From NCBI GenBank assembly GCA_907165135.1, contig OU015567.1:2418001-2482000 (forward strand): a DNA stretch of 64,000 nt, in the 5' to 3' direction. Below, piece by piece: positions 23,213 to 55,716 of this stretch. This DNA is from Oikopleura dioica. Taxonomy: Eukaryota > Animalia > Chordata. The translations under genes were made by a program, and so were the position numbers. How positions within the stretch are numbered: the first letter of the stretch is position 1; every line of letters starts with the position of its first letter. The notes below the pieces were generated by a model. It did no database searches and was not told the DNA's origin. It saw only the letters and a list, made by a program, of their open reading frames with translations.

Positions 23213-24428
23213 TCAGCGCCCATTATTAACTGTCACTGCCGATGCCCACCAGGCAGATGTCCACCAAGGTTGCGTGGTAGTCGTAAAGACAGTAGTTGTT
23301 GTAGCTTCAGTTGATCCTTGGGTCGAAGTTTCAGGCGAAGTTGTTTCCTCAACATGACCATGGAGAAAGTCTTGTCTGCATGGAGCACGGGTGATTTCAA
23401 GATTGTATCGGTAAATCATCCTTTTTCGACGAGCAATTTTTCGGCTGTCTTTTCGACTGTTCCAGTTTTTGTCGCCATAATTCGTTTCAAATCGCTCGAT
23501 AATCGCGTCTAAAAACCAAATATTTTTCATAAAAAAAACAAGAAAAAAACCTTGGCAGCCAAAATTCTGAAGCCAGAGTTCAGTCCCTTCAACCAAATTG
23601 CTCGCAACGGTGCAAGGATGAGCATCAAGATTGGAAAACCATGTGTTCATGGCCGTAGAAGGATCGATTAACCATGGCTTTGCGCAAGTATCAGGCCTGT
23701 CGAAGCGATCCATTCGTTTCTTGATTGCGGCAACTCGTTGTCGCATTTTCTTATCTTTTCTATTTTGAGGAAACGAATTATCACGGGATTTTATTTATGG
23801 AAAACAAAAAATAAAACGAGTTTCACACAAATCGATGATTGAAATTTATTTTTGGGACGCGTTTCGGCCTCAAGGGGCCTTCGTCAGCCCTAAGTACAGA
23901 TTTAAATGAACGTTCAAAAACAGGAAAAAACAGTCTCTCACCTAGAGTGGACAATTTCGAATGAAGGCAAAGATTGAAAACATAAAAACATAATTCGCTT
24001 TCGCGGGCAGATGTAATGGAGCGCCAGAAGAAAGCGAATTACAAATGCTCCATTACAGAAATTTAAATTTTCCTGTTTTTGAACGTTCATTTAAATCTGT
24101 ACTTAGGGCTGACGAAGGCCCCTTGAGGCCGAAACGCGTCCCAAAAATAATTTCAATCATCGATTCATGAGAGGTCAACTTTGGCAATCTTTTACACAAA
24201 TTTATAATCTTGATGCATTTAGAAAATATTTTTTAACAAAAAAAAAATCAGCATTTTCGCACTTGAAAATAAGTATCCCCTTCTTGTAACCCCATTTTTC
24301 TCTCCGAATCGGTGATACTCCCAGAGAAGCAAAAAATCATCAAGATCGGATACAATCAGATCTTTATAATACCCTCTCTCTTGAGCAGACGCTACCGCGG
24401 AAAAAGACAGAAGCTTGAAAAATCGCAT
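23213..24428 (-). CDS. Secreted protein with Thr-rich tail (oikosin-like, inferred)
   Basis: Signal-like MRFFKLLSFSAVASA, then a Cys-containing domain (TCAKPW..HPC..LWLQNFGC..RAPC) and a TTSPETSTQGSTEATTTTVFTTTT tail. Intron 1 holds the hammerhead mini-element. Confidence 0.7.
23854..23890 (-). ncRNA. Minimal type-I hammerhead ribozyme motif
   Basis: The minus strand reads gggCTGACGA-A-GGCC-ccttga-GGCC-GAAAC-GC-GTC-cc: catalytic core, stem II, palindromic ACGCGT stem III and a GUC triplet. Confidence 0.75.
24106..24142 (+). ncRNA. Minimal type-I hammerhead ribozyme motif (inverted copy)
   Basis: gggCTGACGAAGGCCCCTTGAGGCCGAAACGCGTCcc, identical to the minus-strand copy. Confidence 0.75.
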
Positions 24429-54040: not shown

Positions 54041-54200
54041 GGATCGTAATAAAAATTTGCTAATATGAATTCTTTGGATAAGATGAGGCTTTTTGAAAAA
54101 ATGAAGCCGTATCATCAAAGAAATGGACTAATTAATTCTCGTAACAACGATAAAGGGCCTAATTGTCAATAATTGAAAGATTTTTTTTCTCGTTTATTTG

Positions 54201-54239
54201 ATAACTACCGGTTTCGGATAAAATCCTTCATCAGGCTTA
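54201..54239 (-). ncRNA. Minimal hammerhead ribozyme motif in the 3' pLTR
   Basis: The minus strand reads gcCTGATGA-AGGATTTTATCC-GAAAC-CG-GTA-gt, with palindromic ACCGGT and a GUA triplet. Confidence 0.7.
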
Positions 54240-54394
54240 ACAGACAATAAACAATTATTCCGATGTAAAGTAAGTTACCGTGAGGCGGCAAAAAGCACGA
54301 CTGAGTTAGCAGTGTAAAAAGCGAAAACAACAAAGATCTAATCGTAACAGAAACGGCAAAAGGGGCGCCAAGAATGGATTGATGTATGCCCCTT

Positions 54395-55300
54395 TTACAG
54401 AAAATTGACACTTTTGCTCTGAATTTGACGGTTTAAGATCGGGTCTGACAGCTTAATGTGGAAAGCTTCGCCAGTTTTTCGTTCATGATAATTATCGAGG
54501 GAAGTTTCAGTGATAGAAATGAGATCAGATTGAAATGCGAATTCACAAAGAAGTGTAGCGAGGGAAGTGTTTTTTCTTCTGAATTTAGCCAGAGTGCTTG
54601 GATCACTTTGAAAATTATTAAATTTGTCCATAAATTTCTTACAACCCATCGAGTGTGACCTAACAGGCAAATTAACTGCAGGTAAATCGAAATGTTCATG
54701 GAATCTTTTTTCTAAAGGTCTCATAGTTTCTCCTTGATATCTTATGCCACAAAAACATTTGTACTCATAGATTACGCAAGATTTCTTTCGAAGTGGAATT
54801 TCTCGTTTCAACTTTGGGTAAATAACAGATTCGAGGCGAACTGTTCGCCAGGCCATAACTATGCGAAATGACGGTGTCACTTCCCTAATAATCTTTTGAA
54901 TCTTTTTGCCAATAGAATCGCACCTTGCTTCAGTAAAAGTAGCTTTGAAATAATGGACGACCTCCGATTCATTTGATTGAGATGGCTTAGTAAAATTATT
55001 ACTTCGCATGTATCTTACTTTCTCATTTACCAAACTCGGAGGATAACCATTATCTATAAATTTACTTTTAGCTCGCTCAAGGCCCTCTTCGAGCGCCTCG
55101 GTGCAGGTACAGGCATTATTGATACGATTTAACTCTCCAGTAAGTAGTGCGATTTTCTGTGATTGTGGTGAAATATTTTCTGTAAAGTGGGGAACACAAT
55201 TGGAATTTGATGGTTTTATATAATGATAAAGATCGAGTTTATTATTTACATATCTTATTTCACAATCTAAAAATGGAAGTCTGTTGTCTTTCATTTTCAA
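54395..55300 (-). CDS. Penelope-like ORF remnant: RT C-terminal/thumb region plus GIY-YIG endonuclease
   Basis: LPFLD...YIKPS..., NGYP, and CVIYEYKCFCGIRYQGETMRPLEKRFHEH...E. The RT catalytic YxDD core is absent. Confidence 0.9.
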   Translation of the reverse strand: MKMKDNRLPFLDCEIRYVNNKLDLYHYIKPSNSNCVPHFTENISPQSQKIALLTGELNRINNACTCTEALEEGLERAKSKFIDNGYPPSLVNEKVRYMRSNNFTKPSQSNESEVVHYFKATFTEARCDSIGKKIQKIIREVTPSFRIVMAWRTVRLESVIYPKLKREIPLRKKSCVIYEYKCFCGIRYQGETMRPLEKRFHEHFDLPAVNLPVRSHSMGCKKFMDKFNNFQSDPSTLAKFRRKNTSLATLLCEFAFQSDLISITETSLDNYHERKTGEAFHIKLSDPILNRQIQSKSVNFL

Positions 55301-55439
55301 TCCATTCTTGGCGCCCCTTTTGCCGTTTCTGTTACGATTAGATCTTTGTTGTTTTCGCTTTTTACACTGCTAACTCAGTCGTGCTTTTTGCCGCCTCACG
55401 GTAACTTACTTTACATCGGAATAATTGTTTATTGTCTGT

Positions 55440-55478
55440 TAAGCCTGATGAAGGATTTTATCCGAAACCGGTAGTTAA
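55440..55478 (+). ncRNA. Minimal hammerhead ribozyme motif in the inverted 5' pLTR
   Basis: gcCTGATGAAGGATTTTATCCGAAACCGGTAgtt. Confidence 0.7.
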
Positions 55479-55716
55479 CAAATAAACGAGAAAAATGCCA
55501 ATGGTCAACTAGAGATATAATTGAAAGATTGTTATTTATTTTTTGACCACGTTTTATTTTATATGTCTAAAAAATTGAGCTCAATTCAATCGAAATTGAT
55601 GTTGTTGTTGGAATGTAGTGGTAATAAGACTTCCGGAGCTACAATTATAAATTTAGAAGAAGAACGAGTATAATCTTTGCTTGATCGAGGTTTTTATTTT
55701 AATCAGTTTTTTCAAA

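Follow-up and report, generated by a model that had tools for sequence, protein, structure and literature searches.

A probable abortive insertion of a Penelope-like element with two opposed hammerhead motifs in Oikopleura dioica

A 64,000-nucleotide stretch of the Oikopleura dioica genome (contig OU015567.1 of assembly GCA_907165135.1, positions 2,418,001 to 2,482,000, forward strand), called here the window and numbered from its first letter, contains at 23833-24191 a short element made of two inverted copies of one sequence, each with a minimal hammerhead ribozyme motif. This feature is very probably the product of a single abortive insertion of an endonuclease-positive Penelope-like element (PLE) into AT-rich DNA, probably within an intron of a minus-strand gene. 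Two ribozyme motifs are found on opposite strands because each copy carries the minimal type-I hammerhead of the PLE 3' untranslated region (3'UTR). Relics of this kind are already described: minimal hammerheads in PLE repeats, including opposite-strand pairs 100-700 bp apart, have been attributed to truncated PLEs (PMC4209133, 2014), reports of inverted PLE copies with a tail date from 2021 and 2024 (PMC8557442, PMC11167929), and the window element is a further case. The locus itself is of little weight, a young dead retroelement stub that is probably a neutral passenger of its intron; the regular anatomy of its family, with arms always inverted, a single tail each time and no arm reaching into the open reading frame (ORF), provides natural data for a priming model otherwise shown in vitro.

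Anatomy of the insertion and of its relatives

The insertion is 359 nt long and consists of three parts, a 234-nt copy, an inverted 98-nt copy and a 26-nt tail. The longer copy (23833-24066, minus strand) is a 5'-truncated PLE that aligns to the 3' end of a larger family member, L031 (reference 2860-2624), with 96.6% identity over 237 nt. Read in the minus sense, it contains the entire 3'UTR, the stop codon at 24053-24055 and the last three or four codons of the ORF (..KFL*), leaves the family body after ..GAAATTTAA, and has no tail. Its 3'UTR includes a perfect 12-bp hairpin (TAATTCGCTTTC / GAAAGCGAATTA, 23991-24041, minus strand), which is kept in other copies. The shorter copy (24068-24165, plus strand), also 5'-truncated and inverted relative to the first, represents the last ~98 nt of the 3'UTR and is followed at 24166-24191 (plus strand) by the tail, the reverse complement of GATTGCCAAAGTTGACCTCTCATGA, which stands outside this arm only; together, copy and tail match the arm and tail of L031 (reference 125-1) at 90.5% over 126 nt. 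The whole is flanked by a 10-bp duplication of AT-rich target DNA, TCACACAAAT at 23823-23832 and TTACACAAAT at 24192-24201, which agree at nine of ten positions, the last 3 nt of the left duplicate being possibly the element end instead. Other copies of the family have duplications of 10-14 bp in the same places. The element has no ORF.

An earlier note on this DNA had described a 336-bp element at 23830-24165 with two 98-bp arms around a spacer. The inverted repeat is real: arms 23843-23928 and 24068-24153 are 86 nt long and 99% complementary, and they lengthen to ~98-99 nt when one 1-nt indel is allowed (99.0%). The extent needed correction to 23833-24191, with the 26-nt tail included and the 10-bp duplication at the ends, and the symmetric design had to be given up. 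The two copies cover unequal lengths of one sequence, 234 nt and 98 nt, and the "spacer" simply continues one of the arms; every genomic copy has one end that matches query positions 1-240.

We searched the window's own genome (64.28 Mb, 19 contigs) and obtained at least 93 family matches, related autonomous copies among them. The genome holds several small PLE families, with ~25-30 insertions in the family of the window element. In agreement with the Penelope origin proposed in the earlier note, the element shares 95-97% identity with the 3' end of copies encoding a reverse transcriptase (RT) and a GIY-YIG endonuclease (EN), and these larger copies have the same ends placed around a coding body. 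The 2.8-kb L031 has a 614-aa RT ORF and, after it in a different frame, a 145-aa ORF with GVVYHFQCPCGKTDYQGETKRQLGTRIREH, and a second copy, L037, has a fused RT-EN ORF of 602 aa; both score above the Pfam RVT_1 cut-off of 29.6 bits (33.8 and 41.9 bits, respectively). The endonuclease motif GVVYHFQCPCGKTDYQGETKRQLGTRIQEH..EAFSIKL..LN is present in the ORF. Among 27 homologues, Pfam GIY-YIG scores reached 22.8 bits in P0024 (cut-off 22.6), 22.5 in P0013 and 18.9 in P0002. A profile of the family matches the RTs of group II introns, retrons and telomerases, the last more weakly than the other two, and its C-terminus matches a GIY-YIG enzyme, T4 endonuclease II (2wsh), with an E-value of 0.007. 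In a protein atlas the ORF falls among animal clusters of RT plus GIY-YIG (score 0.97); sequence search of the PDB with the single ORF gave marginal RT matches only. This order, an RT and then GIY-YIG, is that of endonuclease-positive PLEs, and together with the anatomy of the copies it points to the window element being a copy of such a PLE.

All copies have a common build, which reads tail, inverted arm, body with variable 5' truncation, and 3' arm, with AT-rich duplications of 10-14 bp outside. Bodies are truncated at reference positions 1232, 1986, 2064, 2194, 2441 and 2624. Inverted arms of 200-220 nt are 99-100% identical. When the flanks of 15 copies are aligned, an extension of 26-29 nt, GATTGYCRRNGTTGACCTCTCATRAAT, is seen to be conserved, and in all 15 it stands outside one arm and never both; it corresponds to the PLE tail known from PMC8557442 and PMC11167929. 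Close pairs of hammerheads of this family are without exception inverted and facing outwards (13/13), with not a single direct repeat. Identity between arms is 99-100% within a copy, against 93-97% between copies.

The inverted arm might have been inherited through RNA, but this was rejected, as 5'-truncated bodies abut full-length arms. Since arms are 99-100% identical within copies that are 3-7% apart, and since variably truncated bodies adjoin full arms, the arm appears to be made anew at each insertion, which is what two-strand priming would predict. In vitro, the PLE PAc of Anolis carolinensis has both target strands cleaved and extended, and reverse transcription starts at two adjacent internal sites with the tail between them (PMC11167929). 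By analogy with PAc, and from the anatomy of the copies, we infer priming on two strands. The GIY-YIG endonuclease would cut both strands of the target with a ~10-nt stagger, and reverse transcription would set out from the 3' end of the element RNA with each of the two exposed 3' ends as a primer, the distal start site used on one strand, so that the 26-nt tail is kept, and the proximal site on the other. One complementary DNA (cDNA) would stop at 98 nt and the other at 234 nt; head-to-head joining and fill-in of the gaps would then leave the duplicated target. The insertion is apparently young, given the 99% identity of its arms and the 3-5% distance of the copy from its relatives.

There is a further regularity among the insertions. 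In 14 insertions from 4-5 families or subfamilies, the inner end of the inverted arm lies 6-14 nt (median 9) 3' of the stop codon (loci L031, L032, L034, L035, L037, L038, L040, L041, L045, L064 and, in the window, 54184-55495), irrespective of the point at which the main copy is truncated and with 3'UTRs that differ in length, roughly 156-220 nt. Shorter inverted arms do occur, and of ~20 arms none enters the ORF. We found no description of this regularity in PMC8557442, PMC11167929 or PMC4209133. It suggests a barrier or an RNA end at the boundary between the ORF and the 3'UTR, for which a protein bound there, a ribosome at termination or a 3' fragment left by endonucleolytic cutting may be responsible. 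Such a barrier, if real, would prompt the jump between templates by which the two cDNAs are joined.

Head-to-head PLE stubs are a recurrent product in this genome. Double-truncated stubs of other families include L044 (G000:C1:3819304-3819633), with 129-nt arms 69 nt apart, and L066 (G000:C2:9432305-9432679), with ~213 and 183 nt. PLE copies are found disproportionately on the 2.9-Mb contig C3, which would correspond to the repeat-rich Y-specific region if the assembly is OKI2018_I69. The paper on the OKI2018_I69 assembly reported PLEs as almost absent and left 44% of predicted repeats unclassified (PMC8008620); the families seen here fit "few", yet they exist. A separate observation concerns a ~456-bp repeat with ~36-nt terminal inverted repeats inside the 3'UTR of one PLE copy (L045:1100-1555; G000:C4:5928199-5928654). 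It has ~20 full-length or nearly full-length genomic copies, mostly 95-98% identical, and looks like a recent family of miniature inverted-repeat transposable elements (MITEs).

The hammerhead motif

The string CTGACGAAGGCCCCTTGAGGCCGAAA is identical in the two arms (minus strand, 23862-23887; plus strand, 24109-24134) and is followed by CGCGTC|CC; its layout in each arm is CUGACGA-A-GGCC-CCUUGA-GGCC-GAAA-CGCG-U-C. The earlier note's description of two ~98-bp inverted arms with an identical CUGACGA/GAAAC core, GGCC stem II and palindromic ACGCGT is thus confirmed on the sequence, and so is its assignment of both to the minimal type-I hammerheads of the PLE kind. The minus-strand motif occupies 23854-23890, with predicted cleavage between 23856 and 23855 and AAUAAA after the cleavage site. 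The plus-strand motif occupies 24106-24142, with predicted cleavage between 24140 and 24141, and has lost the AAUAAA after this site to a 1-nt deletion. In both arms the catalytic core is complete (C3-A9, G12-A14, A15.1, U16.1 and C17, so that H17 is not G), and the core columns are invariant in an alignment of 35 sequences. Stem II is GGCC/GGCC, with G10.1-C11.1 as the first pair and one unpaired A after A9, and the ACGCGU of helix III is palindromic. Stem I, suspected to be weak in the earlier note, has indeed just two pairs in the window copy (G-C and G-C), followed by G.A and A.A; it falls short of a helix I of 4-5 bp, and sister subfamilies have 3-5 bp.

The motif is not the product of chance: the exact pattern CTGANGA..GAAACGCGT has 46 matches in the genome against 2 for the reversed control. 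The loose pattern CTGANGA..GAAA is not enriched in the window (22 matches, 12 expected), and it is the full motif alone that is enriched. A looser pattern was used on the genome to bring in other PLE families with different stems, and 35 distinct sequences from at least five PLE families were aligned; they were chosen by the core pattern, so that the core and the G10.1/C11.1 pair are biased and the other stem positions are not. Stem II is GGCC/GGCC or GGUC/GACC in the subfamily of the window element and GGCAC/GUGCC in a sister subfamily. In the second PLE of the window, at 54-55 kb, it is GGAU/AUCC with the palindrome ACCGGU; further families have GGAGU/ACUCC and GGAAU/UUUCC with ACUAGU, and another GAGC/GCUC. 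Stem I also covaries, e.g., GGGG/CCCC versus GGGA/UCCC.

Over the alignment, 83.8% of the cells are paired, compared with 64.9% in shuffles and 20-47% when the partners are slid, and the covariation score is 0.441, compared with 0.120 in shuffles and at most 0.124 in the slid controls. Both sides have changed in 9 of 12 pairs, including all four pairs of stem I and four of the five of stem II. The unpaired A16 and the pair G17-C31 occur in 35/35 sequences, and the palindromes ACGCGU, ACCGGU and ACUAGU of helix III covary, with 97% of cells paired. The covariation of the fold across at least five PLE families argues that the hammerhead motif is under selection in the PLEs of this genome. Cervera and de la Pena named four features that their descriptor does not impose (PMC4209133), and all four are present here: consensus families that covary, an additional nucleotide behind position 9, the pair G10.1-C11.1, and a helix III that is palindromic.

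In every PLE family of the genome an AAUAAA stands 4-10 nt downstream of the predicted cleavage site (e.g., 23833-23853 on the minus strand, 55468-55495 on the plus strand, L044 and L047). Cleavage would cost the element its poly(A) signal and its tail along with the last ~24 nt, and in PAc the corresponding terminal stretch holds the RT start sites (PMC11167929). By this comparison cleavage looks counter-productive for elements that have only one sense hammerhead at the 3' end.

As the earlier note had anticipated for the host pre-mRNA, any transcript of the element has one ribozyme in the sense orientation and would form a long RNA stem. Whichever strand is transcribed, there is always one sense ribozyme, and it always lies downstream of its own complement. 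The whole element, both hammerhead strands included, folds as a hairpin of -204 kcal/mol (z = -26), and any transcript through it is predicted to bury the ribozyme in a ~100-bp duplex. With no ORF, a stem I of 2 bp, and a single sense hammerhead per transcript locked in a duplex, the relic is probably inert in its present place.

Weighing the readings

Several points weigh against a PLE insertion made by two-strand priming and bearing true hammerheads. At the protein level, Pfam GIY-YIG has no match in the ORFs of the window genome itself, the domain having been detected only through homologues and the profile, and the placement among endonuclease-positive PLEs is by domain architecture and anatomy. 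Two-strand priming is drawn from anatomy and from a lizard element. Simple premature termination does not account for how little the inverted arm varies in length among other copies. As for the ribozyme, the hammerhead families of Rfam (RF00163, RF00008 and others) have no match at the gathering score in the whole window, or at E ≤ 10 in 23700-24300, and the scan returned only spurious hairpin matches, such as MIR8562. Rfam hammerhead models presumably need helices I and III, which minimal hammerheads lack. In RNAfold and RNAcofold predictions of the monomer and dimer, stem II was recovered, but the canonical three-way junction and the intermolecular helix III were not. Folding z-scores of the motif are between -0.7 and -2.6, and the isolated motif does no better than shuffles (z = -1.1), which says little about a motif this small.

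It is conceivable, if rather unlikely, that the hammerhead serves as a structural module of the 3'UTR and not as a self-cleaver, setting up coordinated reverse transcription from both target strands. The module may be an RNA-RNA dimerisation element or a recognition element for the RT, acting via the palindromic helix III. Three facts fit this proposal: cleavage would remove the region in which reverse transcription starts (the last ~24 nt plus the tail), exactly one arm is tailed in 15/15 copies, and in 14 insertions, from 4-5 families or subfamilies whose 3'UTRs differ in length, the second cDNA stops 6-14 nt past the stop codon, with none of ~20 arms in the ORF.

We assign very little probability to a propagating non-autonomous PLE derivative or animal retrozyme, whose transcripts, cut by the hammerheads, would form circles that an autonomous PLE re-inserts; this is close to what the earlier note had favoured. 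The sequence is PLE-derived and has hammerheads, a second short element of similar size exists (L043, 316 bp, 77% identical), and a 2026 preprint ties animal retrozymes to the pseudo-long terminal repeats (pLTRs) of PLEs (10.64898/2026.07.22.740005). However, the hammerheads are on opposite strands, with one sense copy per transcript; because they face opposite ways, no unit would be released by cutting at both ends, and the family's 13 close pairs include no direct tandem. L043, the only other short copy of similar build, has ~217 + 71 nt where the window element has 234 + 98 nt, includes a 14-nt insertion, and is tailed on its long arm, not on the short one as in the window. No further copy with the junction of the window element was recovered in the genome search. 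As the junctions and the tail sides differ, the grouping of the two elements into a propagating short family was rejected, and they are taken to be independent dead-on-arrival insertions. Orientation and junctions largely refute both the non-autonomous and the retrozyme-like unit.

The possible insertion into a gene raises the matter of co-option, in which the intronic sense hammerhead or the hairpin would regulate the host gene by self-cleavage of the pre-mRNA, as a Dicer or ADAR substrate, or through an effect on splicing. The intronic position is plausible, given that an in-frame GT..AG solution can be drawn: a putative 613-nt intron at 23760-24372 on the minus strand (donor GT at 24372, acceptor AG at 23761-23760), ~250 nt without the insertion, would separate exon 1 (24428-24373, minus strand), which encodes the signal-peptide-like MRFFKLLSFSAVASAQER, from exon 2, which begins at 23759 and is in frame, the exons having been translated separately. 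The long copy and its hammerhead are sense to this gene, and the hairpin of -204 kcal/mol is predicted. Nevertheless, a regulatory function is highly improbable: the insertion is young and has no conservation support, stem I is 2 bp as compared with 3-5 bp in sister subfamilies, the ribozyme would be sequestered in the hairpin, and PLE minimal hammerheads cleave poorly in vitro (PMC4209133). The putative product of the host gene (23213-24428, minus strand) is small and secreted, its stalk rich in Ser and Thr and its C-terminus hydrophobic (..TTTVFTTTTQPWWTSAWWASAVTVNNGR), and the gene would have a typical ~47-nt intron near 23505-23551.

An internally deleted DNA transposon of the MITE type, with hammerhead-like strings that are incidental, is suggested by the short length, near-perfect terminal inverted repeats, flanking duplication and AT-rich target, but it is the least credible of the readings and was rejected, since larger relatives encode RT plus GIY-YIG and not a transposase, the arms are the 3'UTR of the RT-EN ORF, the ends are unequal, only one of them bearing a tail, the duplication varies from 10 to 14 bp, truncation points of the body vary on one side only, and the hammerhead covaries across families. 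The PLE insertions of this genome mimic MITEs through their inverted arms, and misannotation is easy.

The second PLE of the window (54184-55516, minus strand) is a 1.3-kb, 5'-truncated copy. Its inverted arms measure 199 nt (99%), and the ORF at 54395-55300 covers the C-terminus of the RT and the EN. Hammerheads occupy 54212-54234 (minus strand) and 55445-55467 (plus strand), a 21-nt tail lies at 55496-55516, and the target duplication, ATAATTGAAAGATT, is 14 bp long. With ~40% amino-acid identity to L037, and with its own stem II and helix III palindrome, it belongs to a different family than the 24-kb element, as the earlier note had held. The two tails, 55496-55516 and 24166-24191, have TGCCAA and a GTTGAC/GTCAAC core in common, in an arrangement that is partly inverted.

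Comparison with known systems

Canonical endonuclease-positive PLEs (Penelope/Poseidon, Neptune, Nematis; Evgen'ev and Arkhipova; Craig et al. 2021, PMC8557442) resemble the elements described here in having a single ORF with an RT plus a GIY-YIG domain at the C-terminus, frequent 5' truncation, terminal repeats derived from their own end, an inverted 5'-truncated copy beside the main copy, a tail at one end only, and a hammerhead in the repeat. They differ in three respects. All 13 pairs of the window family are inverted, with no direct pLTR tandem among them; the tail is 21-29 nt here and 30-40 nt in the canonical elements; and the inner end of the inverted arm is nearly fixed here, falling 6-14 nt past the stop codon.

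The minimal hammerheads of metazoan PLEs (PMC4209133) have the same type-I topology, the same G10.1-C11.1 pair, compensatory changes in consensus families, and a very short palindromic helix III that has been proposed to pair between two copies; pairs on opposite strands, 100-700 bp apart, are known there and are seen in the window. Cleavage by the published motifs is weak and is seen only in dimers or when helix III is extended (PMC4209133). In contrast to the 7-8 bp of Schistosoma, helix II is 4-5 bp here; other differences are the 2-bp helix I of the window subfamily and the AAUAAA that lies 4-10 nt after the cleavage site in every family.

Animal non-LTR retrozymes are likewise short, noncoding, hammerhead-bearing and related to PLE ends. 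They form direct tandems with hammerheads on the same strand and produce circular RNAs, whereas the hammerheads of the window element are on opposite strands.

PAc, a Poseidon element of Anolis carolinensis, occurs in direct pLTR arrays and has been studied in vitro. In the element described here, inverted arms combined with a one-sided tail are what would be expected from cleavage and extension of both target strands and from two RT start sites.

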